The translations under genes and the position numbers were made by a program. The notes under the pieces are model-generated. The model saw only the letters and a program-made list of their open reading frames with translations. It was not told where the DNA came from and searched no databases. This document shows positions 6,662 to 63,045 of a DNA stretch of 64,000 nt, piece after piece. Position 1 is the first letter of the stretch; each line of letters begins with the position of its first letter. Origin of the DNA: Paragordius varius (taxonomy: Eukaryota > Animalia > Nematomorpha); the NCBI GenBank assembly GCA_964247055.1, contig OZ176053.1, positions 6,944,001 through 7,008,000 on the forward strand. The letters run 5' to 3'.

Positions 6662-7587
6662 ATGCATCTATTTCAAATTTTTATATATTTTTTGCTTCTT
6701 GTAGGATGTATCCTCTTATCCCCAATTTATTGTCAAATTCATCTAACGCCATTTTTAGAGAAAAAGATTATTACATCGGTAAATGAAGGATATGTCGGTT
6801 GTTTTGCACAAGTAACACAATTTATTACATAGGTTAAGTCGTTTTTGACAATTTTTTATATGAATTGCGCTTTCCCAATTTTATTTTTTGATTAAACGAC
6901 TTGGATGAAAGAATAAATCCAATTTTAAGCAATCTAATATACTATAAAAAGAACAATTAATGTAAATATAAATATATTTTCTATCTAAAAATTAAAATTA
7001 TAATTTTAAAACATTAAGACGTATATTTTGAAACTTTAAAATATATGATTATATCACCGTACATTTCTACTTCATCCAATATAAAACAATTATGATTTTA
7101 ATTCAAGTTAAAAAATACATCGGTCTTTTGAAACAAAAATATTGTTTTTATATTTTTACGTTTTGTCCGTATAATTTCAATTTTTACTGTATAAATGTTT
7201 AAACTTTTCAAATAATTATTGTTTTGACTTACAAAAAAGCTCTTACATTTTTGCGATATAGTTATATGGTGGTGATGTTTTAGCAACAAATATCAAATAC
7301 ATTTTAAATGAAGCCCCACCCGCTTTTGATGTCAGTAAAGAAGGGAAATTGTGCACAAAAAGTCCGCTTAGCTATGGCATGCAAGCGCAATACAAATTCC
7401 AAGCCCTGGTCAAAAATGATTGGTTGAAAAGTGCTTTGTCGGATATCATAGTGACTCTCATATTTTTCTTCAAAAACAATTGCTAAAAAATTATATATTC
7501 ATTTTTTCATTATTATTTTTCTAACATAATATATTAATTAGTTAGTAACATTTTTTGGATTTTTATTAATAAATATGGAACTGAATC

Positions 7588-7633
<46 letters not shown>

Positions 7634-10443
7634 TATATGTGCATGACAGGTTAATGTTAAAAAGTTATTGTTTAAACCGCCCATCTTTGAGAAAGAAACT
7701 TACGTGATTGAAGTTACTACAGACATTGCGATCAAGAAAACAATACTACAGGTAACGTGTGTGTGTATGAATAATGATGATTTATATTAATGGTAAACAT
7801 GTAAATTCTTTAAATTTGAAATAAAAGAGTCAATAGTTATTTCTATTTGTATAAGTGCCGTTATTCATACATTATATTTGTGTATAATTTTTTTGTGATA
7901 AAATTGATACACACGCGAGGAAATATACCATTTCCACTTCAAGTTTGTACATTAAGCCATTATAGAAAAGGCACCAACTAGAAATGTAAAAATGTTCATC
8001 TTGAAGTGAGTGATGGTATACAATGCGGAATAATTTAGTTATTAATTTTTTCGCACATCATATTTAATGGAAAAAATATTAATTAATGTATAGGTTTTAG
8101 CCAAATCTCAAGATACAATCAATCCATCAGCAATCTTTTATGTGTTAGAGTCTGCCCCTTTGTCCATCGGTCTTAACCAATTAACGGGGGAAATATTTTT
8201 GCTTAAAACATTGAAAAGAAGTCAATCATTGGAAATTAAATTTAAGGTTGTCGCCAAAGAAGGAAACGCCACCTCAACTACAACCGTTACCATTAATTTA
8301 GTGCGAAAAGTATATCAAGATTTATTTTTACATAAATTTTGCCAAAGAAATAACCGGGTATATAGGCTAATTTAACAATGTTTTCTTGAAACTTATTTGG
8401 CTTATTTTATTGCTGTTAATTCGATCTTATCTGTTAAATTTAACACGCCACCTTTCTACTTTTAAAATATCCATTCATATATTAGATTTATATATTTTAC
8501 GAATGTTATTATGTTAAAAAACGGTTCTATATGCAATAATACATTGGAATAATGATTTGAAATCTAACAAATACAATTAACAAGAAAATCATTATAAACC
8601 CAAAACTATTAGACAAAATAGAGAAAATTGATTTCAAAAAACGCAATATTTTATGCGATAATTTTTTTTAAAATAAATAAAAATTTAATTATACTATATT
8701 ATAAAGTATAAGTTCTGTAAAAAAATATTTTGATGAATAGGTAAATGTTTTTCCTCCTCAAGTGACTGTGGTGTCCTCCTTGTTTAAATGTTTATCTACC
8801 AACGATAACACCCCGACAGTTGGTTCCGATAAATGCCCGCGTAAATTTATTATTTTTTGATTTTTTAATCACGCTGGATATTTTTTATTTAATATTTACT
8901 AACCGGCCCTATATTTACGATTTAATCGCTAATTCACTAAGAAAGCAGATACGAAATTATACATGTTGCAAATCGAACTTAACCTATTTCGAAATTATTT
9001 TTTTGAATATTAAATTTAATTTAGTTTGATCATTTGAGGATTTAAATACAGTCCCATTACCGTATAATCTAGAATATGCATAAATACTATACCATTTCCC
9101 AGTCTAAATAAACGTTTTCCCAATAAATCAAATTTTTCCCAGTCAATCGAAACGTTTTCCCAGTCAATCGAAACATTTTCCCAGTCAATCGAAACGTTTT
9201 CTCAGTCAATCGAAACATTTTCCCAGTCAATAAAAACGGTTTTATTTTTGATGATAAATATCAAAACAAGACATAAAAATAACTTTTAACCATTATCAGC
9301 GTAATAGGATATTATTTTTTATAAAAACACAATTATTAAATGACAATTTTCCAAGTATATTCCAGTGCACAATCATTAATGACTTATTCTTTAAAAATTA
9401 TATTTTTGGAATTTGAGATGTTTTTAAGATAAAATTTTTTATTTTATTGATGGTTCGCATTAATATTTGCCGAACGCTTCAAAACAGTTTTTAAACATTT
9501 CAAGTTTTTCTATAAAAATACTGTCGGAAAAAATATCTAAACAAAAAATTTTTTTGATAAAAATGTTTTTGATTTAAAAATATTTAATAAAAAGATATTT
9601 GACTAAAACAGGGGTGTTTAACCAAATGGCTTCGCGGGCCGCATTACTCAAAAAGCACGGCGTTCCGTTCGATATATTTCATGAATAATTTTTCGATTAG
9701 ACATACTGTAAAATACAAAAATATAACAATTTTTTTTAATTTGTTACCAATTTAACAGATTCATTTATTATAATTGCGTAAATTTGAATATTACCAAGAT
9801 TTAGTGATTTTTGCATATGGATTTCTAAATTTTTAGCGAGCCGCACAAAGATACTCGGCAGGCCGCGTTGGCACCCGATAAACCAAATGATAAATATTAG
9901 AAAATTAGGGTAAAATTTATGTTTAATATCCAATATGAGGTGTTAAATGACTTTTGAGATAAAAATGGTATATTTTTATAAATTTTATTATTTCATCCGT
10001 AATAGACTTTATAATTTAGTTGCAGATATTGATGCGAACCATCAATAAAATAAAAAATTTTATCTGAAAAACAACCAAATTCCAAAAATATAACTTTTAA
10101 AGAATAAGTCATTAATGATTGTGCACTGGAATATATTGGAAAATTGTCATTCAATAAATCTGTTTTTATAAAAAATACTATCCTAATATTACTCTGATAA
10201 TGGTTAAAAGTTATTTTTATGTCTTGTTTTGATATTTATCATCAAAAATAAAACCGTTATGTTTTTATTGACTGGGAAAATGTTTCGATTTACTGAGAAA
10301 ACGTTTTGATTGACTGGGAAAATGTTTCAATTGACTGGGAAAACGTTTCGATTGACTGGGAAAACGTTTTGATTGATTGGGAAAATGTTTCGATTGCAGT
10401 GGCGTACCGAGCATTTGCGGCGCCCGGGGCATAAAACTTTATT

Positions 10444-10478
<35 letters not shown>

Positions 10479-13400
10479 CCCCCTTTTAAAAAAGCCAATA
10501 AAACAATTTAGTAAAAAAAATACAAACGTTGTAACCTAAACACCATAGATAAGACAGCACAGTCATATAAATTTTAAATCTATTAAATATATATATATAT
10601 ATATTTATATGATACTAAATTTATTCATTTTTAAATACATAAATATTCTAATGAATTCTATAATATGGAAATTATATATAAAAATAATGTTTTAGTTGTA
10701 TATATCTTATCATTTGAAAATTCTTATTATTTTTGTATTAAAATTTAATTTTAAAATATCATTTAGGCGCCCCTAAATAACGGCGCCCGGGGCATGATGC
10801 ACCCCCTTGCCCCCCCCTCGGTACGCCCCTGTTCGATTGACTGGGAAAACGTTTATTTAGACTGGGAAATGGTATATATTGTTTTTAAAAAAATCTAATT
10901 TCGAACAACATCTAAATTTCGACCTTTAAATTAAGATTTTACTGGATATATATATATATATATATATATAATGCACATTTAGGCTGGTTTATTCATATTA
11001 TTGTTGGTCAATTTGTAACAAAAGAAATTTTATCCATAATTAAAACAAAAGGAAAATATAACGATAAAGGATAATTAAATAGAATTAAATGAAATTATAA
11101 ATAGAAATTATAAACGATATGTGAAACCCTTCGTCAATAGTAATCGCAGACTAGTTTCGTGCTTGTTAGCACTCATCAGTACGACACAACTATTTGACTT
11201 GGGGTTTTCACATATCGATTTCGTATATATATCCAACTTTGCAATTTTGGTATAAATGCAGTTGGTTATACGAATTAAAATTAAATTTTAATGTAATTTA
11301 TGAATATTAAACTGAAAATTTGAAAATAAACTGAAAATTAACTCTAGGGGTGAGCCTAGATTTAGAGATAGCTACTTAGGGATTTCATAGAAATCAATTT
11401 AATAACTAAGAGTGCTAACAAGCACGAAACTAGTCTGCGATTACTATTGACGAAGGGTTTCACATATCGTTTATAATTTCTATTTATAATTTCATTTAAT
11501 TCTATTTAATTATCCTTTATCGTTATATTACGGATTTTAAAAACTGTTATTACAAAACATAACCAATCCGTTCATTACCATTACAAAAGGAAAATATGTT
11601 TGATTTCTACACTATGTTGTTTTTTTCATACACTACTGTGTTGCCAACCACCTTGTAAATAAGCCGGCCGGCACAAATGTGCATACGATATGTAAAATTA
11701 ATAACTTTTTAGAACAAATTAGTTTGATCGAGGATACAGCTATCGATACCCTGATAGCACAAGTAAATGCTACGGATCCAGACCCTATGCCGGGATCTGG
11801 CCTGCAGTACACACTAAGCGGAATGAAATGTAAGCAGAAACAAAAATCACAAGATTGCTACAAAATAAGCCCGGATGGAAGAGTTACACTAAGTGCAAGC
11901 CTAAATTCCGCTACAAAATCTCAATATACGCTAGTTGTGGAGGTTGGGGATCAAGGAAATCCACCCCTGTTTACCCAACAGCCCTTGTACATTGCCATAA
12001 CGCCTAAGGAAAAACTATTGGTCAGTGTATTAAAATTTAAATAGATTATTAGAAGCACGCATAATATATTTTTGATAACTTTATTAAAACAAATTATTGA
12101 AGAATGTGGTATACATTATAAGAAAAACCTAAACAAGTTTTATTTTTAGTTCAACAAATATTGTAATCGAAAATTTATGTTTTACTTATATCAATTATTG
12201 CTGAATTTCTTTATTTTCAATTATTATATGTTAAACGATTATAAAGACAATTTTATACTTTTAATTTTTAAACGATAAGAAAAGTGTTGAAATATGAAAT
12301 TTGTAAAAGAGTCCTTAAGTTTATCATTAGTTTGTCTCCATTTACAATGGAAAGGTATAAACATTATATACAGTAACGAGCACTATTTATGGGCCACATC
12401 TGTATTTTAAATGACTAAAAAAGTATTAAATTTACATATAAAGTATGCATTTTAATGGTTGCTATTTTCACACTATAGGGCAATTTGCAACACAGGAGTG
12501 TATGGAAAAAAGAAAGGAAATAATTGTATATTCAACATTTTGTTGTTTTTCCATACTTTACTGTGTTCCAAATTGCCCTACTATAGTGTGAAATAAGCAA
12601 CCATTATAATGCATAATGTAAATAGCCATTTTTAAGAATTTTCGTATAAGTTATATTTTTGAGAATTGTAAAAAAATAATGTTAAAATTTGATGCTTGGA
12701 AACAGACGTGTAAATTTACACTTTTAGCCATTTAAAATACAGATATAGCCTATAATAATCCTCGTTACTGTAATTGCTCTATCGTTTAGAAATTAATAAG
12801 TGCCCCTTTCTATGGTGTGTATGTTGGGACACAACCTGGTGCAATAGTTGCCAACATATATGTGGATGCCACATATCCTGAATCGATAAAAATTAATCAA
12901 ATACCCCTAGAATCAACGGGTGGATCTGCTAAAACCACAACTCAAACAGACAACCAAAATGTTTTTAAATATGATGCGGATAAAAAAGCTGTAATTTTAG
13001 CCAAGCCCATACCCTCCAGTGCTTACCATGAAAAAATTAGATTAAAGGGTATCCAAGCTAGCCCGCTCAAGGAAACTGACATAACGTTAGAAATGTTTTC
13101 GTATGATCGGGAAGGTAATTTTTTTATCCCTATAATAATAATGTAGAAAAGGTATATTTATTGCATTGATGTAATAGCTTAATATAATTCAGCCGTATTC
13201 GATTGCCATTTACAAATATGTTTTCGGAATTGAATTCGTTTTTTTTAAAAAACGTTTTTAAAACACTAATCAAGTTTCATACAACATTTTTAGCTGAAAT
13301 GGTGATCGCTGAAGCTATTGATAAATTGGATACTGTGGCATGTGCTCTTGTCGCAATATTTATAATTGGAATCTTGTGTGGAATTGGATATTATGGGTAC

Positions 13401-16400
13401 ATAAAATTATCTGCCAAATCAACTACATCAAGTTTGTATTTTATCTGTTTATTTAACTTTTTTGGTTGGATGTGAATTGTATAGTCGTTTACATATTGAA
13501 ATTTCCTTTAAACCAGGAGTGTCCAACACATAAAGTTTCGCGGGCCACATTCAAAATATATAGGGACATAAATAAATATTTTATTAGATTCAACTCTTGA
13601 CTATAAAATGGAAACAAAATAAATAATTCTAATTAGTTGCTGTTAAAAGTTAACAATAATCATTATTAAAACAAAGAAAAAATATTATTAATATACCTCC
13701 CTGCTTTCTCTGCCCAAAATTTTCAATGTATAAACGACTAAACCTAAATCTATATCTTAATTTTATGCCAAATTGTAAAAATATTTTTATTAAATCATTT
13801 AAAATGAAATTATTCGATAGGATAGTTACAAAAAATTTCGATACAAAAATTATTATCAATGATTTTCAATAAAGTTATAAAATTGGAAACTGGAGGGCGC
13901 CGCAGAGAAGAAAAAAAGAAATCCCCTGGATTCTTTGGAATCGCATCCTTTTTCCAAACGCCAAAACCGGTTGAACAAGGCCTTCAAGCCAAAATGGAGG
14001 ATTATGACCCAGCAGACTATAAATATGACATGGATTACAATTACGGAACTTCAGGCGAATATGATAATTATAATTCATACGCAGATGCCTACAGCAAAGA
14101 TGTAAGTTGATATAAAATGAATTAATTATTAAATATTCCTAGAAAAGGTTAACGTAAATAAGCGTTAAAGTTAAAATTTTCAGACTAGAAATGGCCAAAA
14201 TTTGTTAGCTTTAAAACATGCATGAGATACCGGATTTTATAACCTCTAAAAGATTGTGGAATGATGCATAAGCTGATAAAATATATCTGTGAATAACTTA
14301 AGAAAAAGCTATATTTAATTAGTTACTGCCGTTTTCTAGTTATTGATTTTATGGCAGTAATACTCAAATGCGGCCCTAAAAGTGCATGTGGCCCTAAAAT
14401 ACTTTTTTAAGGCAATGAATTATTTATTAAATTTTTTTATATATTTATTTGGAGTGTAAATACCTGCAAATGTGTCAAACAGCTATGAAAATTATCGCTA
14501 TGACCCTTGAGACCAGAATCATATTTTTTTGGTCATAAAAATCTTTGGTGAGTACCAGTGATGGGTATCGAATTTGCGTCTGATGCGAATTTTTTGTTTT
14601 TTAGTGTAAATAAGATTTAATTCTTCCATAATATTAAAATTTTAAATTTAATTTATATATTTCTTCTAGCAATATTATGATGAAGCATCCAAAGACTATA
14701 GTTACGGGGTATATATTTTTTAAATAGTACAAGGCAATTTAATTTTTCTCACACTTACATATTTTATAAAAAATTTATTTCCTTTAAGGGTGATGCCAGT
14801 TCCTACGGTGGCCAATCGGTAATAAATTTTTTTATATAAAAAGTGATTAATTAATCTATAATTCAGTGATTAATATCAAATTAGATAAATAATCATTTTA
14901 ACCGTTATAAATTATTTATAGAACTATGACGCCTCGGCGGCAGCCTCCAATTATGACGCATCGGTATAATTATAATTTTATGAATGTTAAAGGCGCTAAT
15001 AAAGAAATATTTGGAAAATCTTTTTTAAATTTACCAAATATATACAAGAATGTTATCAAACCAAATTTATAATCGTTCATGTTCACGAATCCCGTTTAAA
15101 TATTAATTATTTTAGGAAAATAGTTATTTATAAAAGCATATTTGAATATTCTTTAATTCATATGCAATTAATATCAATCGGACATGATAAAAATTATCTC
15201 GTATGCTTTTAATTTGATTTTGGAGTTAAAACTTCTTATAATGAAATGCTTTAGTTATATATAATTTTCGAAAAATTTAAGTAAATCTTTTATATAAATT
15301 GTAATAAAAAATTTGTATAAAAATGATTGTTAAAACGGATAACATTTGGTCAACTGTCCGATCAAAAAATAATAACGGTATGATCGCTTATGAATGCGGT
15401 TATTCGAGGAATAAATTATATAATTAAAAATGGTTAAAGGTGATTTATTAAACAAGATATAATGATAAATAAATTTGGGGTATACATGTACAAAAAAACC
15501 CAACCCTAGAATCAACTAACTATTTTTTATTATATTTTTCAAAAAATTTTATTATCCACATGATGAAAAAATGTATTATTTTTTAGGCATATGACGCTTC
15601 CGCTGCTGCTTCAAACTATGATGCTTCGGTAACTCAACTATTTTATGTTAAAATATGTTTAGAAAAATTGCTTCTATCCAATAAAATTTTCCACAACCCT
15701 TATAAACTCAATAGATAACCTATAGAATATTATGTATATGCATAAATTAAATTTTATAAGCACAATATAAACATCTGATGTATCAGGATTCTCATGGTGC
15801 TTTGGGTTTTGACTTTAAGAGTCATTTAAGAAAAATGTTTGTACTATGGTAATTGTTCAATATCGAAACGGAAAACTAGTGTGTTAAATTTTTGGATATG
15901 AACTAAAGCCTCAAAACCTAAAAATGTTAATGTAATGTATCTTAAATTTATTTAAAAGCGAAACAATGAAATTTTTGGTGAAAGTCCCACTTTTTCGGAC
16001 CCCGTTTAAATTGGCTAATTTTTTTCCAATAGGCGCAAAGGAGTCGAGATTTTGCAATAAATTTTTATTTTAAATTGAATTTATAAATCATATTTTTTTA
16101 ATTTAAATTTCGGAGAAATTAAAGAGTATCTTATGGTAATATAGCCTGATTAAAGAGTATAAACACATTAAAACAAATTTTATTCTAATTCGATGCTGCA
16201 ATATATTTATATTACCTTAGAATATATAATAAATATACATTCGCCTTCAAATTAAAGTGGATTTTTAGAAAAACACAATTTATCAAATATATTAGATGCA
16301 CGAAAAAAAGAGCAAAATCTTTACTGTTAATGTTATATAACTTTGGCATTAAATGTAATGTTAACTTTCCTAGATATTTCAATATATCAATTTTATTCAA

Positions 16401-17793
16401 AAACATGCGAAAATGGCACTTTATTTTCATTTTAAAATTTTTTTACACTTGCAGTAAAAATTGAAATTATACGGACAAAACGCGAAAATATAACAATAAA
16501 TATTTTTATTTTTAAGAGAACCATACTTTTTTAGTCTTGATTTTTTTAAATATAACTCCTTATTTTACATTTTACACTACAAAGTATAATTTAGAAATGT
16601 CAATTGGTAACACAATTAAATATGTATTTTACAATTGTAATTAAATGTTTTTTATAGGATAAATTACGGTTTAAAAAAATATGGTTGTCTTTTGAAAAAA
16701 ATATATGTCTTTATATTTTTACATTTTGTCCGTATAATTTCAATTTTTACTGTAATAAGACAGTTTTTATGAGTATTTCATGAAATGCTTTCTTTTTAGG
16801 CATATGACGCTTCTGCTGCGGCTTCAAACTATGATGCTTCGGTAATTAAATTTTAATCATTTTACAATGATTTGAGCAATAACTATTTTAGGACAATCTA
16901 TTAAAAGTCAAAAATTTTCTAAATCGTTTCTTTCATTATTTATATTATTGCTTATGAATATATAATAATTGTTTTCTAAATTAAAAATAATTAATTATGT
17001 TTTTTCAGGCTGCCGATTCCAACTATGGACAAGTAATTTTCTACATTTCATTATAAGCAATCTTTTAAAAAAAATTATACGAAAAATAGTTGTAACAGTA
17101 AATATGGCAATTTTTTTAAATAATTGACACTGATGTAAAATATTAATCAATTGTTTATAATTCAATTTTAGAGTGACGCGGGAGCTTATGATGCCTCGGT
17201 AAGTTAAATACAATTTGCTAATAACAATTACATACAAGTCAAACATATTGAAATTCCGAAAATATCATATTTACTATATTGAAATTAAAATAATTTTTCA
17301 AGTAATGTTTTCTAAACCGGAATCACAAACCTTTTCTCGACTTGAAACCATATAAAATTCTACAAACCGTTTTTAGAACCCAAATAGCGGTTCTGGCGTC
17401 TACAAATTAATTTTGTTTATAAAAAACTAGCCTTTTTATTTAATATAGTTGTCTATTTTATTTGAATGACAATAGTATATTTTTTTAATAATTTGCAAGT
17501 AAAGTTAGTAATACAAAGGGTTTTTGTAGAAATGTTGAAGTTTTTGTAGCTGTTTCTCCACAATTTTTCAAAATATGATATCTCTAAATAAAAAAACCGA
17601 AATATACACTTTATAAAATGGTACATTAACCCTTCAAATGAAAAAACTCTTTTGAAAGCAAAATGAGATAAAAAAGTGATTTGGAACCGGTAAATACGGT
17701 TGCTGTTCTATTCCTTAATATTTAACAATTCAAGACCATTATTTTATAATTTAGGCATATGATCAATCCAATTATGGTGCAGAGAAAACATAA
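6662..17793 (+). CDS. Single-pass cadherin-repeat protein, 17 exons, 679 aa, with a Tyr-rich microexon-encoded tail. Exons: 6662-6811, 7262-7450, 7650-7751, 8094-8309, 8741-8840, 11713-12020, 12790-13114, 13294-13431, 13875-14101, 14670-14708, 14789-14818, 14922-14963, 15587-15628, 16800-16841, 17009-17032, 17172-17198, 17755-17793
   Basis: Signal peptide MHLFQIFIYFLLLVGCILLSPIYC; cadherin-like repeats, including a canonical LIEDTAIDTLIAQVNATDPD...YTLVVEVGDQGNPP; TM segment VACALVAIFIIGILCGIGYYGYI. All introns are GT-AG and phases are consistent (2040 nt total). Confidence 0.85.
7594..7631. repeat. (TA)n microsatellite just upstream of the cadherin exon 3 acceptor
   Basis: Uninterrupted TA run. 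Confidence 0.95.
9088..10876. mobile_element. Foldback DNA element with long inverted arms and tandem 21-bp subrepeats (cadherin intron 5)
   Basis: Left arm TATACCATTTCCCAGTCTAAATAAACG + (TTTTCCCAGTCAATCGAAACR)n is mirrored at the right end (...GACTGGGAAATGGTATA); arms extend several hundred bp; an hAT-type MITE relic sits in the middle (about 9608-9890). Confidence 0.8.
10397..10831. mobile_element. Non-autonomous hAT MITE inserted into the foldback's right arm
   Basis: TIRs CAGTGGCGTACCG / CGGTACGCCCCTG; perfect 8-bp TSD TTCGATTG (10389-10396, 10832-10839); sister copy at 63046-63438. Confidence 0.9.
11060..11582. mobile_element. Penelope-derived or retrozyme-like non-autonomous retro-insertion carrying a hammerhead ribozyme
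   Basis: Flanked by a 15-bp direct repeat ACAAAAGGAAAATAT (11045-11059, 11583-11597); contains a perfect 120-bp inverted duplication (11055-11174 / 11410-11529) and a hammerhead core. Confidence 0.7.
11143..11185 (-). ncRNA. Minimal type I hammerhead ribozyme
   Basis: Minus strand reads GUCGUA-CUGAUGA-GUGCU-aaca-AGCAC-GAAA-CUAG-UC^UGCGAU: complete core, 5-bp stem II, 6-bp stem I (two G:U), palindromic ACUAGU stem III, GUC cleavage triplet. Confidence 0.85.
12371..12770. mobile_element. Tc1/mariner-type MITE (cadherin intron 6) with an internal nested hairpin element (about 12466-12595)
   Basis: TA|CAGTAACGAG...CTCGTTACTG|TA termini with extended imperfect inverted arms. Confidence 0.7.
16450..16755. 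mobile_element. Foldback MITE (family C) between two YDAS microexons
   Basis: CAGTAAAAATTGAAATTATACGGACAAAA is mirrored by TTTTGTCCGTATAATTTCAATTTTTACTG; the same arm occurs at about 7110-7190. Confidence 0.65.
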
Positions 17794-18022
17794 CTAAGGT
17801 TAAGAAAGTTGAAAGCGAGAAAAGCTAGGGTAATTACCGAAAACATCCCTATGTAAATTATTCATATCCGTTATTTTGTTTATAATATGATACCTAATGA
17901 TAAAATTTCTACTAATGTTTTCTATTATAAAGAAATGCTTTGTAATTAACACAAAATAAATTTATTGAAAATATGTATACGAACTGGATGTACATTATAT
18001 ATTTGACTATCATTAAGCGACA

Positions 18023-21000
18023 TTAACTCCATGTTTCCATTTGAATGCGTTTTCTTTTCAAAAGCTGTTGAATGTAAGCTTTGGGATCGTTTTGTTCCAT
18101 AGATGCCTTCAAGTAAGGAGCTATGCAAAACTCTAAAGCGTCCAATACTTGATCTGGCATTTGTTTAGACCTCCTTAAGATAAGAATATAGTACTATTTG
18201 GGTAAAAAATATGATAGCTTTTTTCCATTAATTGGACATACTAAGTTATTTAGATGTTGGGCAAAAACATATATATATATATATATATATATAAATGACT
18301 TTTATCGAACAAATTTTGAATTTGCATATGCATAAATTTTATTTCTTTATTAATTAAAACCAAGATTTTATTATATAAAAAACATAATCAGGTAAAAAAT
18401 AACAAAAGATAAGAAATAACTGACTGTGATTCATTACAATATAATCTAAAAAAGCTTATGGCAAACCGTAATAATAATTAGACTTTGAAGTTATGACTAG
18501 AAATGCGATGTTTAAAATAAGCTAAAATGCAATAAATTTATTTTTATTGTAAAATATATCAGATAAAGCAGGAAAAACGATTATAAAAAGGTCATGCGTA
18601 AAACCGTTTTAGACATATAAAAAAAGGAATTACCAAATCTATTACATTACTTATTAAACTATAAACAACTGACATAAAATAAATGTTACAATGAAAAGTT
18701 ATTATTTTTACATGCCAACCTAGTTGCTAGAAACTTTAGAGCACAAAATAGATAACTCATAAATATTCTATTGAAAAAAATGGTTATAAATGTTAGAATT
18801 GATTTAAACAGTATGAGTTGCAATAACCAAAAAATATGGGGAATGTAATAATATAAAGATACATACCCAGAAATAAAAATAAAGGCATTTTCGTTAACAA
18901 TTAATTGACCAAGGGTCTCGCATTGTTGGCGTATTAGGTCCTGTACGTATATCTTATTTTTCTACATATATATAGATTTTGATAATTAATTTTATAATAT
19001 GGGTTAGACTATTAACCTATGATAATATTCTATAAATTTTAAATTAACATGAAATGGTTTGAAACAGGAATAATTTTTAAAAAATATTTTTTCGGTAACT
19101 GTGCGGGTGGAAGCGTTTGTTAATAATCTACAAATTTGCTCAAGGATATTAAACAATATTACATAAGTTATAAAAGAGCTTAAGTACAAACCAATGTATG
19201 AAAACCTAATAATTAAGAATTAAAAGTATATTATCATATAAATTAAGCTTAAAGAATATTATCTTCAATTAATTTATAAACGACAAATATGTTACTTGAT
19301 CTCTAGAATAGGCAGTAAACATTTGCAGATATCCATCAGAAACGTATTGTTCAAATTCTTTCTTAAAATATTCGTCCTTATCCATGTTTCGACATCCAAA
19401 AAACAAAAAATTATCTATGATCAATACATATTTATTTTATATAATTAAAAAAATATTTTGTAAAAGGTATATTAAGATAGGGTCAAATAAAAAAAAATTC
19501 TTGAAACTGCACTTCAAGATGTCCCATAACATTTATGGTTGTGCCCCTGAACATATAACGAATGTCATTAATTTCAAGTTTCTCCTTAGACATTTTGAAA
19601 TTGGTTCCAACTTTTATCAATAAAACTATCTATCCTATTATTTTTAACTTAACTTTTAAATCAAAATGTTTATAATGTTGTTTAATTGGAAAAAAATGTA
19701 TTTAAAAAGTCGTTTTTGAATTAAAAATAATCTTTTATAATAAAATTGACACAAAAATTTGAATATATGCAAACCGAAAACATTAAGGACCAACTTGGAG
19801 TGTTAAACCAACTTAAAATATTGAAAGACAAATTTTATAGAATGGAAACTCTTATGTTCAAAGACAGACTTAAAGTGTCAAAGGACACTCTTGAAGGGCG
19901 AAAAGTATAAAATTACGACAAAATTTATATAATATATTAAAAAATAAATAGTTGATTTAAATTACAATAATTGTATATGTCAAACTTTACATGTTAATAA
20001 AAAATAAAATACGCTTAATTCCGTGTTGTATGCGATAATGGATTAAAAAATGCAAAGGAGCCACTCCAGTACCTGGTCCAACCATAATGAACGGATATGG
20101 TTCGGAAGGAACATAAACAAATCCTTTCTTAAGCCGAACATCAATGTAGGAATGTTCTAAAAAGTTGGAACATATATTTAGTGTATAGATTAATTATATG
20201 CTTATATAATAACTACTATTATAAATAGTTACAGTAAAATTTAACTATAAAGACAAAACATAAAAAGCAGAATATAATATTTTGTTTATAAAAATATGTG
20301 ATTTTTAAATGAAATGTATTGTTTTGCGATGTGGATGTGAAAGATGTAAATAAATAACACTATTTTATAATTGAAATAATATGGATAATAAAAATAATTA
20401 TTATGTTTGTTTTGTTTTATCATTAAAATATCAAGATAAAATAATATGTAACAATCAAATATTCACAATTATATTTACCAGGGTATTCAGAGAGCCAATA
20501 CGAACATGTCCCTAACCTGGGTATCTTTAATTTTGTTTTATATTCAACTACTGCCATTAAAATTTGAATCTTTAGTTTGGTATTTGAAATATTTTTTATA
20601 TGATCCCCCTTTTGTTCATTGAGTATTGGTATAGTTTGACACTGTGCTATTGAAAAATCACGAGGTTGAATACAGGGTACTACTCTGTGTACAACGTGAG
20701 ATAAAGGTATAATTTTTGCAGTGGCAGGGAAATCACAGAAAGTTTCAAGTATAGTCCTACGAACCCGTGAACTATAAGAGTATAATTCTTCTAACGAATC
20801 TACATTTGTACAACATAATTCAGATAAACGGTCATGTTCCATCCCAATCTTTTGTGTGTAAGTCTCTAAAAGAGATGCTGATGATACATTATCAGTCAGC
20901 GTAATACTAAGTTCTGATTGCTCAAACGTTTCAAATAACGTTTTCGTATCATCTAATGCAATATCTAGTCCGTGTTTATCAATGTGGGCAAAAAAGGATT

Positions 21001-23320
21001 CAACAATGATTGAAATATTTGCAATAACTTCATCTAAATTTTCATTTGTAGCAGAATTCGTATCGATTTGTGCGGTAGAACTTAATTTGTGTTCTTTAAG
21101 ATACTGACATATTCGGACAGACAAACGGGCATAATAAAGTAATCGACGGAAAAATGAGCGCCTAGGTACGGCTTGTAAATCAATGCAATATAACATATCA
21201 CGTATATTGTCTTTCCAATTATTTATATTTGAGAAGTTTTCGCAAACATTGCTATTATTATTATGCTTTTGTGAAGGATTTTTAATATATTTGGAGAAAT
21301 GTGGAAAATTATCGTCAATATTATATAATTTTATGAAGGATTGAACAACCGTTTCCCTGTTCCGAGGCAAAATGGATACAATATCAAAGGGTTGGGGTTG
21401 AAAAATGTTACTGTATATTTGTATATATATACAAAAAATGTGATATAGGGTGAATTTTCTAAGAATTCAGTGTTAATTAATATTTTGGTGGCTAAACAAT
21501 AATGCATGTATATTTAAAGTTTTTTATTTTATCAGTAAATGATAGTCATATTACCGGCCTTTGAAGTTTGGCTGTTTACCCCAAAATTATATTATTGATT
21601 TATAAATATATAACTAAATCAAAGCAACACATAATCATCGATGAAAAACCAAAAGTTTACAGATAATGCTTTATTTATTCCTGGGAAAAACTAATAATTC
21701 TCATAAATATTAAATATGTTTATATATCATGGTACACTACCCCTTATTATTTAATTGTTAATTTCGTTATTTTATGATGAAAAGTTTTAAAAATAGCAAA
21801 ATTTTCATAATACATAAAAGGTTAAAATACATACTGAGAGAAGGGATACGTAATCTCAATATTTCTGACATTCTGAAAGAAATTTAAGGGAGTTACGCGA
21901 TCATTATGAAGTATTTGACATTTGACAAACTCTTCTTTGACATTAGCAGCTTTGATTTCTATATATGGGCTAATAAAATGAATATAGTAATAAAAAGATC
22001 GAAAATAGAAAGGTGCAAAATAATTACAATAAAAAGTCTTGAAAAGATGACGGACCAAATTTGATGCCAAAATAATTTCTCAAAAGTAGTTTGACCCTTT
22101 TCATCCATTGATCGATTTGGAATTCTGGACTAAATTAATGATATGCATGCATTCATACCCCTGGGGATATTGTTCATCTACATATACTGGTTCCATTAAA
22201 GCCGTCGCAGATAATTGTTTTAATCTGTTATGTAATTTCTTGGCAGCATAATTATATCTAAATAGCAATAAATGATGGTTTTTATAATTAGTTTTAGGTT
22301 ATGGGTTAGGTTTGACCGGGTATGAATGTTAAGATATTTGACTATGTACGCTTTTAAAAATTAGTCTTTAAATGAAATATACTGTAATTAAAAAAAGTTT
22401 AAATTATAAAATTATATAGTGGTAAAACAGTTTATATATTATTATATTAACCTCGCAACCACGTTTTAGTATTATACCATTTATATTCATTATCCTTAAA
22501 CAATTCAAATTCACCCTCGGACAAATCAAATTCACCCTAAAAATAAGTTATGAGATTTTGGGCTAATATAACTCATATTAATATGAAATATATTTTTACG
22601 TAGTTTATTATTTCAGAATTATATTAATTTTAATCAGAATTTCATATTTTAAAAATATTAAAAATTAACGGTAATTTAATATAGAAAAACACATAATTTA
22701 GTTTAGGGTGAATTTGAACTGTAAATGGTATATTATATTATTACTTAAATTGTAGTTGCGGCACTTTACCTTGATAAATTTGAATACATTTATAACTCAA
22801 TCAGTTATATATATATTATTTTGATAGACAGTGAACAAACGTGTATTTTTGATATACAATTAATATATCCGTTACTATAAATATATTGCTAACACTATTT
22901 ACCACACCATTTATTACATTTAATGTGGTCGATTCCTAAACGTACATATATGATTTATAATAGTATTAATTAGTACTTGGAATAAGTGCTATCACCAAGA
23001 CCTAACAAAATGTATCGCAATCCTTTGAGAAAATTATTGGCTAAGCTTTTCCTTAACAGGGATTTCCAAAACTTTCTCATGTTTGTCGGTTCATCTCCTT
23101 GACCAGTTGTGGAACAAATAAAGATAAAAAAGTTTTTGGGGTTTAATTCCTAATTTATTTTGCTAAATACTTCTGCCATATATTCGTCCATTGAAGACAT
23201 AAAAACTTCTGAAGTATCCTGCACAATAATATCGGTGAATAAAGATTGAGCGACATCCTGAGCGGTTCCAGTTTCGCTCCCAAATAAAATTAAGATTTTA
23301 TCAGTTAGCGTGGTCTTCAT
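18023..23320 (-). CDS. NDOR1: NADPH-dependent diflavin oxidoreductase 1 (Tah18 homolog); start may extend in frame to 23344 or 23443
   Basis: ILILFGSETGTAQDVA and CSTTGQGDEP...MRKFWKSLLRK...LGLGDSTYSK|YNYAAKKLH (FMN domain); PRRSFF, RRTILETFCDFP, IQPRDFSIA (FAD); MVGPGTGVAP, FFGCRN, AYSRDQ, IYVQD, MPDQV, C-terminal IQMETWS* (NADPH). Exons joined by GT-AG introns. Confidence 0.95.
19508..19900. mobile_element. Degenerate foldback MITE (family B) in an NDOR1 intron
   Basis: CACTTCAAG...CTTGAAG ends with about 21-bp subrepeats; a related copy lies at about 53619-54070. Confidence 0.5.
22473..22732. mobile_element. Family A MITE in NDOR1 intron 2
   Basis: TATACCATTTA...TAAATGGTATA termini and TTCAAATTCACCCT subrepeats; internal sequence colinear with 916-1215. 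Confidence 0.7.
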
Positions 23321-41944: not shown

Positions 41945-42375
41945 TATGGTGCGTCAGTTGGGTTGTCAGTTAGTTAAAATGCCGCCACATTTTGACTAAC
42001 TCCCTGGTTACAAAGGAAAATCGCAAACCGCCAAATATTCTAGTAATTATAGTCAAAAAGATATGGTGAGTCAGTTGGGTTTTAAGTTGGTTAAAATGCC
42101 GCCACATTTTGACTAACTCCCTGGTTACAAAGGAAAATCGCAAACCGCCAAATATTCTAGTAATTATAGTCAAAAAGATATGGTGAGTCAGTTGGGTTTT
42201 AAGTTGGTTAAAATGCCGCCACATTTTGACTAACTCCCTGGTTACAAAGGAAAATCGCAAACCGCCAAATATTCTAGTAATTAGAGACAAAAAGATATGG
42301 TGAGTCAGTTGGGTTTTAAGTTGGTTAAAATGCCGCCACATTTTGACTAACTCCCTGGTTACAAAGGAAAATCGA
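41945..42375. repeat. 117-bp minisatellite, about 3.6 units
   Basis: TTACAAAGGAAAATCG recurs at 42008, 42125, 42242, 42359. Confidence 0.95.
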
Positions 42376-45070
42376 AAAGAGAAATGCAATTAAACAGCCA
42401 AATATGGAGCTATCCATAACAGAAAAATCCGAATTACCGCCAAATTTGGATAATTCAGTAGTTACACAAAAAGAATAACTTCAGAAAAATTACAATTTAA
42501 TTTATTGCAGATACTCTCCCCTTACCAAAACAATCTATAGATCAAATTATAAATAAATGTAGATCATATTTTACTTACTAATTTAACAGGTGTAGAACGT
42601 TTCACTTTATTAAATACGTTAAATATTTTGTAGCAAAATAAAAATAACTGTGTATATAAGAGGGTCAAAAATTAGATCAATTTTTCGTGGACACAAACGC
42701 AGGTACACTTACAAAACACTTTATAATATACCTAGTTGATATTGTTAATTGTATTTTCAAGAAAAACAGTTAGTAATAATTCAAGTATTGTGATATTACA
42801 CAAACATGTACAGGAAAAAATTTCTCTAGACAGCCTTAATTAAAAAAAAATTTGGCCGATATTTTTTATACATTCAGGGAATTTTAGCTGCAAAAGACAT
42901 GAGGACAAGCGATAACAATTGCAGGACGTAATTTCTCGCTTAGGCAGGAACGTCGGTCAAAAAAGAACTTATTTTTTTAAATTCGCGCGACAATATCATC
43001 TGACCAGATATCATTGAAGCCGGCAGAAAATTTAAGAATCGAATGGGACGAATATAGCCCAGGCCAGATTTGATTCGTAAAACTTCATCGAAAACAGAAT
43101 GTAACATTAAATTTTTACGAGTCAACCTACGTAAAATACAACTTCAAGCTTAACGTAGAGGGAAAAATGCTCGACGCTTTCATTGCAGGCATGGGAGTCA
43201 AAAAATTAGAATTAGATCTGTATAGCAGATTCCCCAACGCCATGTGGGAAAACGAACCCTAACCCTAAAACAAGTGAACATTGCTCTCAATTATGAATAG
43301 GCACCTCAATTAGCACTAATCGATGGCAACATGTTACGACAACAGCTGGGAAATACCAGCACAAGTGTCGATTCTGCCGTTTAAGTCATGACTGGAATCA
43401 CCTCCAACTATACTGTAAGAAAAAAATGATTGCAATGTTTAGAACATCGAATGTGAAGCCACCCCTAAGATAACATTGATAATTAATTGTAAGCCAATAC
43501 GCATGATGATGGACACAGTCAAGTGTTTCTTTTTTCGTCCCAATTCAACATTAAATTCGAAATTTCGAAAATTAAATAAGTTTTAGATCCATGTATTTAA
43601 TATCATTCGAAAGAGCGTGAAAAACTGTATCCTCCAAATGGTAGTAAATTATTTTTAATTAATCAGATGTAAATTTGATATGGTCGAAATTTTCAGCCCT
43701 GTAAACAAGTCAAAAGTTTTCACAGACAAACTATTAATTTTAATATTATTGGATATTGTTTACGCTGAAGTGTGATTGTATTATTATATATGGAATAATT
43801 CAGCAAAAATAATATAAATTTATTATAATATTTCGATTACTACAAGTAATCTTTGTCAAACGTAAAATATGGTTATATTAATATTTAATTAAAAAAAAGT
43901 CTTTGAAAAAGCTTTTGGTTTGCTTTATTATAAAATTATTATTATCTTAATTATTTTACCTGGTGAATACTAAAATGCATAGATATAACTGTAAATTTAT
44001 TGCATAATGGCCATAAAAGATCAAAATACCTTAAACTTGGTTCTTGTTTTTAAAATTTTGAAATTATAAGCTTTAAAAAAAATAATTGATGAGATGGTAA
44101 TTTTTTAAAAAACTAAACACTTAATGGCTGTTTTGAGTATAAAAGCAATAAAAAAATGTTTTAATCATTAAAACTCTCTTGTGTTTTCTTTTTTGGACAT
44201 CATCACCATATATACAAAGTTTGATTTATTTACATCCATTAGTTTTAAAAATATATTAAATAAAAAAACGCTCTCGTTTCGTGCGTTTGTCGCTCTCTAT
44301 GCCCAATATTAATAATAGATGTAAAACATTTTAAACATTTTATAGAGTTGTTTTACTCTTTCGAATGATATATTACAACTGGGCATTTCTTGTATATTTT
44401 TTGAAGGAAAACATTTTTTAGTAAAATTTTGATAAAGAGGATGCATAATCAAAAAAATCAATTTATTCGACTTAGGTGAAGATATAATTTTTATTTCAGA
44501 TTTGCTGTTAAAATGATGGAAAAATGCAAACTTGAGTAGCAGAAAAATATACTGTCCATTGTAATATCTCGTAAAAGGTGTTCGTTGACCTTTATAAGGT
44601 ATTGAGTGCCATACCTAATATACAAAAATTATTTATGAAATTATATTAAAATAGTTTTTTTATTTACTATCTAAGCTCACTATTAACACTTGATTCAATT
44701 TGGGTAACTAAATACAACAGACTAAATTAAAGTTAAAATTTTTAAAAATATACTGAAGGAAACGGTCGTAATTTAAATTTATGCTCTTGTAAAGTTGATT
44801 TATTCACATATAGCAATATGGTATATTAAAATAGAGTTGAGCGATAAAAAGAAAAACCAAAATAAAAAAGTGAGTGGCTATTATATCACAAGTTCTTTTT
44901 ATGTGTGCATGACTTATTTGCGTAGACGTTACACAATGGTTATTCTCAACAACAGATAAGCTTTAACACGAAATATATATATAATATTCAAATACAAAAT
45001 AACTGATGCAACATGAATTGAGTGTGTTAACAAAATAGAATATTATAACCTTACATTACTCTCCCCCTAA

Positions 45071-48000
45071 GTTAACCACGGGGGCTGTCGTGTTCGTACA
45101 TTATACCTATAAGTTTAAACGATCGGGAGGCTGCCGTCTTCTTAGCGGATATCTACGCTCGGGTAGGTCAGAAACCTCTTTTACCACGTCGGGTGTGGCC
45201 TCTACCGGCGTCAGCGATTCTGGGGCTACGTCTTGCTATGAGGTAGCAGGAGTTGGGGCATGGACTATTTGAGATTCCGAGGTGGGATGGAAGGTTTGTT
45301 CGGAGTGGGCTCCCTCGAAATGACCCGGGACACTTTCGACGCTGGGATATTTATGCAGTATTAAGGGATTAGTTTCGTATGAATTCCCTCCTGACCTACG
45401 TCGTAACTGATCTGCATGTTTACGTTTACGAATCCCTTCCTCATCTTGCACTTCATACGAGAGTAACCCCCTTCTCTCCAGAATGTGACCTGGCCGCCAG
45501 CCTACGGCCATTTCATTTTTAATATAGACAGGATCGTCTTGTTGGAATTCGCGTCTCGGTTCATTTTCGTGCTCTATAAATTCGACAGGGGTTGTTTTTA
45601 CCCAAGAGATAGGATTGTGTACACGCCGTTTTAGGAATATGGCGGAAGGCGTTTCTTTTAGCGAAGAATGCATGCTAGTTCGATACGAATAAAGGACCGT
45701 GTTGATAGCTTCATATGCATGCATTTGTTGGGTCTTAGTAGCGGCGTATTTTGTTTTTAATGTCTTTATTACTCCACTAGACCGTTTGTTTTGGGGTGAT
45801 AGGGTGCTGCACAGATGTGCTTGATATTCATATGATTTAGGAGAGTCGTAAATTCTCTTGAAGTAAAATACGTGGCGTTATCGCACAATTTGGCGGGGAA
45901 AACCAAATCGTGCGATGTGTTTTTCCAGGCAATTTAAAACGCATTGACTCGTTATTGATTTAAAAAGATCTATCTCTACCCACCGTGAGGCGCTATCGAT
46001 AGTCACTAACCAATAATATCCGTCCACCGGTCCAGCAACATCTATATGTAACCTTTCCCATGTCAAAGTGTTAAAATTCCATCGATAGGGAAGATTTTCA
46101 GGTGCGTTAGGTCGATAGGTTTGGCAAGCCTCGCACCTTTCCACATAATTCGCTAGATCGGTGTCTAATTCGGGCCAAAATACCGAACACCGGGCTTGGG
46201 CTTTCATTGTTTTTAGCCCGCTTGGTCCCGTATGCAGAAGTTTCAATATCGTTTCCTGCATCGCTTGTGGTATCACTAAGCGATCATTCAGGTATAACAG
46301 ATTATAACAACACTCCAAGTCGTTTTTATGTTTTAAAAAAGGTTTCAGATCTTAGTCGATCCAACTGTTTGTCCTGAGAGCATTTTTAACTTTTGATAAC
46401 CGTTGGTCAGTGATCGTTGCCTCTTCGACCACTTTCTTATTTACATCCAGCGTTTTTAGAGCCAAAAATCGTACCTGCTTGGTGGCCGCGGCATCTTCAT
46501 CATCTGGTTGGCTATGCTCTATGGGAAGTCTCAACGCGTCGGCTAAGTTTTCTTCCCCTTTTTTGTAAAATATTTCATACTCGTACCTGATGGTCTTCGA
46601 TATCCACCTGAGCAGTTTGCTATTATTAATGTTGTTGATGTCTCTCTTCCTCCCAAATAGTGACACCAGCGGTTTATGATCTGTATATATCTCGAACGGT
46701 CTTCATATAAAGTATTTAAATTTTTCTAGGGCAAACACTATGGCCTTGGCCTCTTTTTCGATCGTGGAATAACCCTTTTCTGCTATTGAACAAGTTCGTG
46801 ACGCGTAAAAAATTGGGCGTTTCCCCTGTGGGGTCTTATGAAACAGTATTGCCCCAAACCCCTTGTTGGAAGGATATGTTTCGATCAACAAGGGAAAACA
46901 GTCGTTAATTGGCATTAAAGCCGGGGGCCTGGTTAGCAAGCTTTTTGCTTTCGCGAATTCACTATCATCTGCCGGGGTCCACCGCCAAGGTGTATTCTTT
47001 CCACTTAACTTGTGTAAGATTGCTAGGTGTGGGTGACAGTTTGGTATAAACCGCTCATGAAAATTTATTAAGCCTAAGAACGAACGTAGCTCAGTTTGTT
47101 TGTAGGTGTCGGACAATTTTTAATGGCCTCTAATTTTTCATTGGACGGCTCAATACCTTGGTCAGAAATCACGTACCCCATGTATTTGACTCGTGAGATA
47201 CCAATTTGCAATTTGTTTCGGCGCAATCGTAATCCCGCCTCTTGTAACCTTCTAAATACTTCCCTTAATCTTTGATCATGTTCCTCCCTGGTAGCTCCGG
47301 AAATTAAGACATCATCCAGGTACACACAAATACCAGGTATGTCCTTTAAAAGATTGTCCATGCATCTTTGAAAGATCATAGGTGCTGAAGTTAATCCGAA
47401 TGGAAGTCGTTGGTAAGCATAAAACCCTTTGTGAGTTGTGATGGTTACTAGCGTCTGTGACGCCCGGTCTATCGGAAATTGTAAGTAAGCATCTTTCAGG
47501 TCTAAAGTGGAAAAAATTATCCCATTTGCCACTTTGGTGGCCAACTCGTCAAAAGTAGGTATCAGATGAGAATCCTTTGCTAAATAACGGTTTATACTAA
47601 TTCGGAAATCGGCAATATCCTAATTTCTCCATTTCCTTTAACTATATTTACTGTGGGAGAGGCCCATATTGGGGTTTGGGTCGGATCGATAGGTCGGAGT
47701 ATTTTGAGTTTAAATCTATCAATTTCATTTTCTACTAAAGGTTTTAGAGTTAAAGGTACCCTACGACAAGGAAAAACTTTAGGTTTGGCCCCGGGGTCGA
47801 TAAATAATTTTATTGGGGGCCACTTGAAAGTACCTAACTCGTCTGAAAACAATTTGTCAAAATAATCAAATAACATTTTATTATTAGGTGCTTGCGTATG
47901 TAAAACTGAAAAAACATTTTTTGGGAATTCTAACCGAAACGCCCGCATCCAATTCATCCCAAACACGGCTGGCGGGTTAGTTTGCGTCACCACGCAGGGC

Positions 48001-49027
48001 AGGCACTTCTCTTCTTCGTTCAAAACCACTGAAATCATCGATTTTCCGAGTACTTCTATCGGACCATCATTGAAGGTTCGCAAATTTGGAGCTGGGAGCA
48101 AACGAGGTCGACCAATATTTACCCAAGTGCGCTTGCCAATTACGGATACCTCGGCGCCCGTATCGTAGATAAACGTTGTTGGTATATTATTTATTAGTAC
48201 CTGAATCCGGGGGGTGTTGTTCGGGCTAGTCATGGTGCGGATTGACGGCCGTCGGAACGTTGCCTTGCATACTGTGCTGAAATGATTCCATTTGTCGCAA
48301 TTGAAACACCGTTTTCCTTTTGCCGGGCAGGTGGCGAAACCATGTCGATACCCACAATTACTACATAGCTTTCGGGTTATTTGATTGATTGTATTATTAT
48401 CATTAACAACTGGTTGGATACTTGAAGGAAGTTCACTGGTATTATTATTGTTCAAATCATTATTATCTCTGATGTTGTGAACCTTTTTATCTTCTAATTC
48501 ATAGGAATAAGCGATGTCTACAATCGCTTGAAGGGTTACCGGACCCCGTCCTTTTTGCCATCTGGATATTTGGATTGAATTTCGCGTTCTACTCTGGGAT
48601 TTTCAAGACCTACCAGGAATAAATCGCGTAATTTTGACTGAATATCCCCTTCAAATTTCCCGGCTTCACACTTTGCTTTCAGACGTTCCAGGAAATCCAT
48701 GACTGATTCATCTGGCATTTTTTTTAATCGGTAGAATTCAACTCGATTTAACCATAGGCTGCTGATTGGTGATTATATCTGAGTGGCCAAGGTTGCAATT
48801 TCCTCCCATTCCATGTCATCTATGAGTTTTGGGTATGCTAACGTTTCGATTTTCATTATTACTTGAATACCGCCGAAAGCGAGAAAAGTGCGTTTCATTG
48901 TGGTGTCATTGGATTCGATATTTTTGGAATTTAAGACTCTCCTGATGTGACGTATATATTGCGTAAAATTCATCGGTTCCTTAAAAGGCTCCAAAATCAG
49001 TTTTGAAATGTCCAACGCTTGGCTCAT
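45071..49027 (-). pseudogene. Frameshifted gag-pol polyprotein
   Basis: Twin zinc knuckles CSNCGYRH..CPAKGKRCFNCDKWNH...VC, protease YDTGA, RT LPFGLTSAP and YLDD, RNase H, integrase LHTG...C..C and RLHIDVAGP, scattered over many ORF fragments. Confidence 0.93.
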
Positions 49028-61894: not shown

Positions 61895-62430
61895 AATGGT
61901 GCGTCAGTTGGGTAGGTTAGTCAAAATGCCGCCACATTCTGCTGGTTACAAAGGAAAATCGAAAACCGCCAAATATTCTAGTAATTATAGTCAAAAAGAT
62001 ATGGTGAGTCAGTTGGGTTTTAAGTTGGTTAAAATGCCGCCACATTTTGACTAACTCCCTGGTTACAAAGGAAAATCGAAAACCGCCAAATATTCTAGTA
62101 ATTATAGACAAAAGGATATGGTGAGTCAGTTGGGTTTTAAGTTGGTTAAAATGCCGCCACATTTTGACTAACTCCCTGGTTACAAAGGAAAATCGAAAAC
62201 CGCCAAATATTCTAGTAATTATAGTCAAAAAGATATGGTGAGTCAGTTGGGTTTTAAGTTGGTTAAAATGCCGCCACATTTTGACTAACTCCCTGGTTAC
62301 AAAGGAAAATCGAAAACCGCCAAATATTCTAGTAATTATAGACAAAAAGATATGGTGATTCAGTTGGGTTTTAAGTTGGTTAAAATGCCGCCACATTTTG
62401 ACTAACTCCCTGGTTACAAAGGAAAATCGA
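61895..62430. repeat. 117-bp minisatellite, about 4.6 units
   Basis: Anchor TTACAAAGG at 61946, 62063, 62180, 62297, 62414. Confidence 0.95.
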
Positions 62431-63045
62431 AAAGAGAAATGCAATTAAACAGCCAAATATGGAGCTATCCATAACAGAAAAATCCGAATTACCGCCAAAT
62501 TTGGATAATTCAGTAGTTACACAAAAAGAATAACTTCAGAAAAATTACAATTTAATTTATTGCAGATACTCTCCCCTTAACAATCTATAGATCAAATTAT
62601 AAATAAATGAAGATCATATTTTACTTACTAATTTAACAAGTGTAGAACGTTTCACTTTATTAAATACGTTAAATATTTTGTAGCAAAATAAAAATAATTG
62701 TGTATATAAGAGGGTCAAAAATTAGATCAATTTTTCGTGGACACAAACGCAGGTACACTTACAAAACACTTAATAATACACCTAGTTAATATGTTAATTG
62801 TATTTCAAGAAAAATAGAATTCAAGTATTGTGTTACACAAACATGTATAGGAAGAAATTTCTCTAGACGGCCTTAATTAAAAAAAAAATTTGGCCGATAT
62901 GTTTTATATATAGAGCGAATTTTAGCTTCAAAAGACATGACGACAAGCGATAACAATTGCACGACGTTATTTCTCGCTTAGGCAGGAATGTCGGTCAAAA
63001 AAGAACTTCTTTTTTCAAATTCGCGCGACAATATCATCTGACCCG

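Follow-up and report, generated by a model that had tools for sequence, protein, structure and literature searches.

A cadherin-type gene of the horsehair worm Paragordius varius with a predicted tyrosine- and aspartate-rich cytoplasmic tail encoded by duplicated microexons

Introduction

What kind of cytoplasmic tail would an adhesion receptor gain if its last coding exons were a run of tyrosine-rich microexons? The question is raised by a cadherin-type gene on the forward strand of a 64-kb stretch of the Paragordius varius (Nematomorpha) genome (64,000 nucleotides of contig OZ176053.1, assembly GCA_964247055.1, positions 6,944,001 to 7,008,000), hereafter the window, in whose coordinates all positions below are given. 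A first reading of the letters, here called the original prediction, had proposed that eight microexons give this receptor an array of phosphotyrosine docking sites of adjustable number. Our analysis inclines, somewhat beyond an even chance, towards a 17-exon cadherin-type gene whose selectively constrained, disordered tail, built from duplicated microexons, would form a multivalent platform with probably phosphorylated tyrosines.

Results

Chaining exons on the plus strand from 6662 to 17793 gave 17 exons that join into one unbroken frame of 2007 nt (668 codons), and all 16 introns possess canonical AG/GT boundaries and consistent phases. The predicted product comprises a signal sequence, an ectodomain of ~440 residues, one membrane span and a 180-residue tail. 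Judged from its sequence, this is a genuine gene of 17 exons that encodes a type I membrane protein of 668 aa. It lies in AT-rich eukaryotic DNA (GC ~28% in the window), in keeping with the 26.93% GC published for the assembly of the horsehair worm Gordionus montsenyensis (10.1101/2023.06.26.546503). Downstream of its TAA codon an AATAAA follows at ~160 nt, and the stop codon of a convergent NDOR1 gene lies tail to tail at ~230 nt (17793-18023). Both features are consistent with a genuine 3′ end of the cadherin gene, and the narrow spacing implies that the 3′ untranslated regions of the two genes must be very short or overlap.

The last eight exons, which encode the last 94 residues, measure 39 nt (exon 10, 14670..14708), 30 nt (exon 11, 14789..14818), 42 nt (exon 12, 14922..14963), 42 nt (exon 13, 15587..15628), 42 nt (exon 14, 16800..16841), 24 nt (exon 15, 17009..17032), 27 nt (exon 16, 17172..17198) and 39 nt (terminal exon 17, 17755..17793; 12 codons and the TAA stop at 17791-17793), all on the plus strand. 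All eight are multiples of 3 in phase 0, and each is preceded by a T-rich tract and AG, with GTA following all seven internal ones. The array thus stands as first described, in number, sizes, phases and peptides, with coordinates within 1-2 nt, and any internal microexon could, as had been claimed, be skipped without frameshift. The microexons also differ from the introns in composition (GC 0.33-0.60 vs 0.14-0.27). In the six-frame translation of the window the motif YDAS occurs seven times, every time inside the microexons, against 0.22 occurrences expected from shuffles. When both strands of the window were scanned with a microexon template (a pyrimidine tract, AG, an open frame of 24-42 nt with GC of at least 0.5, and GTA), 11 matches were obtained, six of which are microexons of the tail, all sharing strand and frame and lying inside a 2.4-kb stretch. 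A scan of the tail introns for hidden extra or decayed microexons found none.

Comparison of the three 42-nt exons provided the clearest sign of constraint. They constitute a repeat family limited to the exon with its splice signals, and a satellite or transposon origin of the 42-nt units was rejected on that basis. Exon 12, the oldest copy of the duplicated unit, differs from exons 13 and 14 at nine sites in 13 shared codons, all nine of them synonymous and none non-synonymous, a pattern that 0 of 20,000 random placements reproduced (P<5e-5); exons 13 and 14 differ from each other at two sites, both synonymous. The 100 nt flanking each 42-nt exon are 26-38% identical between copies, compared with a random level of 33% for this composition. 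Third-position divergence of these exons amid unrelated introns, and the protein-level selection deduced from it, had been part of the original prediction and were borne out here. A second signature lies in codon choice: where a microexon ends in a Ser codon, that codon is TCG (5/5), which accounts for 4 of the 43 Ser codons of exons 1-9 (chance ~7e-6). A terminal TCG supplies the preferred G at donor position -1, indicating a splice constraint. On this sequence evidence the microexons are not a product of chance, and selection acts on the peptide encoded in this frame as well as on the splice sites; their inclusion in mRNA would follow from the same signals.

The tail that these exons complete is compositionally extreme. 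Exon 9 (13875..14101, +) encodes a basic juxtamembrane stretch and then the onset of the Tyr/Asp-rich region. Ala, Ser, Tyr and Asp make up 71% of the last ~135 residues (24 Y and 21 D; the tail counts 32 A and 26 S), which include a single Pro, no Pro in the last 120 residues, and no aliphatic residues. With ~25 acidic residues in 135, the tail has a pI of 4.2. Its tyrosines, spaced one per 5-9 residues between Ala/Ser spacers, are all contained in the last 128 residues, in agreement with the 24 Tyr and seven YDAS motifs counted before. A motif count returned 12 YD, eight YDxS, seven SxYD, five YG (all [S/N]YG) and one YxN, and no YxxP, Yxx-hydrophobic (Yxx[MILV], YxxΦ) or NPxY; the residue at +3 of the tyrosine is nearly always Ser. 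As read from these motifs, the tail matches no standard SH2 or PTB consensus. SxYD corresponds to a casein-kinase-2-type Ser consensus. A C-terminal PDZ ligand was considered and rejected, the protein terminating in Lys-Thr. Exon 9 has no relatives in Pfam or PDB, none of 150 known cadherins aligned to the tail in a search with the spliced model, and the ESM Atlas places exon 9 nearest to low-complexity regions rich in Tyr (Sam68-YY and the hnRNPA1 low-complexity region), with scores of 0.41-0.43, a weak match that we treat as a lead only.

The assignment to the cadherins rests on the upstream exons, all on the plus strand. Exon 1 (6662..6778) supplies the start codon and the signal peptide (an ATG-initiated hydrophobic N-terminus of 39 codons) and ends in phase 0 at the donor TCG/gtaaat. 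Exon 2 (7262..7450) encodes a first, short cadherin-like repeat, sub-threshold against Pfam Cadherin (E 0.15) and aligned to cadherin repeats in the spliced model. Repeat 2 starts in exon 3 (7650..7751), whose splice sites are consistent in phase, and is completed by exon 4 (8094..8309; Pfam Cadherin E 0.0044, below the cut-off). Exon 5 (8741..8840, ending in phase 1) reads as a linker, and exon 6 (11713..12020) encodes repeat 3, the best conserved, which scored 40.5 bits (E 3.7e-10) against Pfam Cadherin PF00028, above the curated cut-off of 28.8. When the spliced protein was aligned to 150 known cadherins with phmmer, residues ~40-370 matched cadherin repeats in hundreds of alignments; those spanning the exon 2/3 and 3/4 junctions support the upstream gene model. 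These results uphold the identification of the gene as a cadherin, for which an HMMER check of the ectodomain had been proposed. The nearest solved chains to exon 6 are those of CELSR1, protocadherins and cadherin-23 rather than classical cadherins (E 4e-18 to 1e-6), and the ESM Atlas likewise recognized exon 6 as cadherin, with exons 7 and 9 uninformative.

The rest of the ectodomain is more divergent, and the spliced model contains three clear cadherin repeats and one degenerate. Exon 7 (12790..13114) encodes the membrane-proximal domain, possibly a degenerate fourth repeat; alignment to cadherin repeats is confined to its first ~25 residues, and no family was detectable for it in Pfam or the ESM Atlas. 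A structure prediction had also been suggested; a single-sequence AlphaFold model of exon 7 is all-beta, but its pLDDT of 44 makes it too unreliable for use. As read from the gene model, the NDN calcium-site motif is kept in one inter-repeat linker only, that between repeats 2 and 3 encoded by exon 5; the 1-2 and 3-4 linkers are Lys/Leu-rich stretches, and repeat 3 retains a DPD. Hydropathy peaks at residues 1-24 and 464-488, the latter corresponding to exon 8 (13294..13431), which encodes the transmembrane helix (residues 467-488, the top hydropathy window of the protein) and is followed by a basic cluster. Since the tail follows a membrane span bordered by basic residues on its inner side, it is predicted to be cytoplasmic, and on this topology we rejected a role of the tail as an extracellular substrate for cross-linking or sulfation.

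By its predicted features, at least one extracellular PF00028 repeat above threshold, a signal peptide and a single span, the product belongs to the cadherin superfamily. It lacks the catenin-binding tail of a classical (type I/II) cadherin: the Pfam domain Cadherin_C was not detected, exon 9 having no Pfam family at E<=1, so the absence of catenin-binding motifs noted before was confirmed at the level of domains. Nor, with its three clear repeats and one degenerate, does it belong to the clustered or delta protocadherins, which have six or seven repeats and conserved cytoplasmic motifs. The protein is a non-classical, probably lineage-specific member of the superfamily, whose calcium-binding linkers look mostly degenerate.

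Searches for relatives of the whole protein returned little. HMMER with repeat 3 against 1.84 billion representatives singled out no ortholog, because giant multi-repeat cadherins with additive scores swamp the list, and none of the best 150 matches has a similar tail. Word-index protein searches gave no matches, either with exon 7 alone or with a carrier alignment in a length window of about 230-720 aa. The last negative has some force, since the 668-aa model itself would reach 337 bits with the profile of that alignment. The protein collection probably contains neither the gene product nor close kin, unless the search derives its length window from an alignment in another way. Metagenome scans, one with exon 6 as protein and one with a degenerate pattern built on the 13 core residues that the 42-nt exon encodes, were also without matches. 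These empty results probably reflect a lineage barely represented in protein collections. A literature search that covered the motif, cadherin tails rich in Tyr and the cadherins of horsehair worms found no description.

Other elements lie within the introns of the gene and elsewhere in the window. A small foldback element of MITE-like type in intron 13 (16449-16755) has arms of 59 nt that are 86% complementary, and a related copy (82-86%) is found in intron 1 (7124-7191). Intron 5 contains a foldback element of ~1.8 kb (9088-10892). Each of its arms is built from tandem 21-nt repeats, and complementarity between the arms reaches 97% over 104 nt; the FPSQSKR-like repeated peptide that appears on translation of the element is probably meaningless. 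Just upstream of exon 6, the same intron carries a perfect 120-nt inverted repeat (11055-11529; 100% complementary, 235-nt spacer), which had earlier been flagged as the carrier of a hammerhead; at the Rfam gathering threshold no ribozyme was found there or anywhere in the window, and Rfam and tRNA scans of the window gave no matches. In the convergent NDOR1 gene, a large exon (20426-21466, -) aligns to orthologs over about a third of its 347 codons, which suggests, as far as alignment can tell, that this conserved flavoprotein carries roughly 200 residues inserted in a lineage-specific manner. The NDOR1 search retrieved distant orthologs only, at ~45% identity (bivalves, vertebrates and sponges), and, over the range of lengths covered by that search, the collection did not contain the NDOR1 of this window. 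Two long open frames at 41970-42389 and 61917-62444 (-) encode near-identical tandem units of ~39 residues (RFSFVTRELVKMWRHFNQLKTQL...). They probably belong to a repeat, satellite or transposon-borne, that occupies two locations in the window. Decayed LTR-retrotransposon pol/gag fragments at 45236-48455 (-), comprising protease, reverse transcriptase and integrase-like frames, coincide with a GC-rich block (0.35-0.41).

Discussion

The evidence points to an array that would have grown by tandem duplication of a symmetric 42-nt exon, with exons 13 and 14 as the youngest pair, separated by their two synonymous differences. The microexons have been preserved by selection, on the encoded peptide as well as on the splice signals, and most of them may be included constitutively. 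The predicted cytoplasmic tail would begin with a basic juxtamembrane patch and continue into a low-complexity region, strongly acidic and intrinsically disordered, which may act as a multivalent binding platform beneath the adhesion site. Flanking Asp residues would keep the tyrosines accessible, and these are probably phosphorylated; the acidic context would suit tyrosine kinases, and the seven SxYD sites would suit a kinase of the casein-kinase-2 type. Several observations weigh against this reading. The function of the tail is read entirely from its composition, its net charge of ~-20 argues against simple self-association, and Ser at +3 of the tyrosines suits no well-known SH2 class. The donors of exon 8 (CAA/gtttgt) and exon 2 (ATA/gtgact) are weak, and none of the searches of protein collections and metagenomes found an ortholog.

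Among the alternatives, the one that survives best dispenses with phosphorylation. It envisages an acidic-aromatic disordered tail of stickers and spacers, likened to prion-like low-complexity domains or acidic activation domains, that clusters the receptor or recruits basic partners through many weak Tyr contacts. The even spacing of the tyrosines between small Ala/Ser/Gly spacers, the five [S/N]YG motifs and the lack of aliphatic residues and of Pro near the C-terminus all fit such a tail, as do the weak language-model neighbours among Tyr-rich low-complexity regions of RNA-binding proteins. Its acidic content, however, is far above that of FUS-like domains and should oppose homotypic condensation, and as a complete account of the locus we consider it possible and rather doubtful. 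As to the role of the tyrosines, a phosphorylation-independent sticker function is nearly as likely as that of a phosphorylated platform.

The reading first proposed, a phosphotyrosine/SH2 docking array in which regulated skipping of individual symmetric microexons sets the number of sites, now appears improbable. It draws on the 24 tyrosines in acidic context, on the 12 YD motifs, which recall the +1 Asp of Nck-type pYDxV sites, and on the fact that any subset of the internal phase 0-0 microexons could be skipped in frame. The SH2 part of the proposal found no support in the motif count, since these 24 tyrosines include not one YxxP, Yxx-hydrophobic or NPxY and a single YxN, with +3 nearly always Ser; the repeated YxxP, or another recognised SH2 consensus, that would place the tail beside p130Cas is missing. 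Symmetric cassette exons of the kind known from splice-tunable arrays (titin PEVK, CD44) are indeed present, all phase 0-0. Symmetry, however, arises automatically as a by-product when one symmetric exon is duplicated, and the splice sites seem strong throughout and much alike (T-rich tract and AG, GTA, G at -1), which favours constitutive rather than regulated exons. Least credible of all is a gene that ends after exon 9, with the downstream units as relics or chance: read-through does meet a stop three codons into intron 9, whose retention could give a short isoform, but synonymous-only divergence, splice-driven codon choice, the exon/intron GC contrast, the strong enrichment of YDAS and of microexon-like segments, and a consistent frame whose stop is closely followed by a poly(A) signal and by the end of the neighbouring gene all speak against it.

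The gene combines features that are known separately. Fibrillar collagen (54-nt exons), titin PEVK and tropoelastin are each encoded by short phase-0 exons that correspond to one low-complexity repeat unit; such arrays expand via tandem exon duplication, and the length of titin and elastin is tuned by exon skipping. Here, by comparison, the units are 24-42 nt long, encode a Tyr/Asp/Ala/Ser peptide and belong to an adhesion receptor, whose cytoplasmic tail they would form. The schistosome micro-exon genes (MEGs), small secreted proteins whose coding sequence consists mostly of 6-36-nt symmetric exons, resemble our gene in that exons of normal size flank a series of symmetric microexons. In the cadherin gene, though, microexons contribute 285 of 2007 coding nt (14%), three of them are 42 nt long, they encode a predicted intracellular part, and the product is a 668-aa membrane protein, which sets the gene apart from the schistosome type. 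Multi-Tyr docking regions such as the p130Cas substrate domain (YxxP x15), nephrin (YDxV) and CagA (EPIYA) are likewise disordered, rich in Tyr and attached or recruited to an adhesion site, and nephrin/Nck sites share the +1 Asp, the one feature in which the tail recalls a known docking site; the +3 Pro or Val that defines such sites is missing from the tail. The prion-like [G/S]Y[G/S] domains of FUS and hnRNPA1 resemble the tail in their evenly spaced Tyr and small polar spacers, with five YG here. What sets the tail apart from them is its high acidity (pI about 4), its abundance of Ala and scarcity of Gln and Gly, and its membrane tether.

Among cadherins, CELSR/Flamingo, protocadherins and cadherin-23 have the extracellular repeats closest to repeat 3. 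They possess 6-27 or more repeats compared with 3-4 here, where most linkers lack DxNDN and neither seven passes nor another known intracellular domain is present. Lineage-specific cadherins with orphan tails are common. In C. elegans, six nematode-specific members (cdh-5, -7, -8, -9, -10 and -12) are largely uncharacterised (PMC11844738). Compared by description, these are similarly single-pass proteins of one ecdysozoan lineage, with cadherin repeats, a tail unlike the catenin-binding tail and mostly unknown function, whereas we found no report of a Tyr/Asp repeat or microexon-built tail for them, and tyrosine goes unmentioned in the text of that paper (PMC11844738). The description of the locus as an undescribed system was therefore overstated, short symmetric repeat exons and lineage-specific cadherin tails being already known; what is not described in the literature searched is the combination of a cadherin receptor with a Tyr/Asp microexon tail. 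At present the locus offers a well-supported gene model with an unusual tail, and a new system as such is not demonstrated.

It is conceivable, and in our view improbable to much the same degree as the docking array, that horsehair worms possess a small family of cadherin-like receptors in which combinatorial skipping of symmetric Tyr/Asp microexons sets cytoplasmic valency, for example between parasitic and free-living stages. If so, splicing would tune the number of phosphorylatable or sticky tyrosines on an adhesion receptor. Should transcripts confirm the gene model, the locus would provide a clean natural case of an exon-duplicated, disordered, multivalent Tyr tail on an adhesion receptor, in a phylum with a scarcely explored cell biology, and a tractable system for the effect of tail valency on adhesion signalling or clustering.

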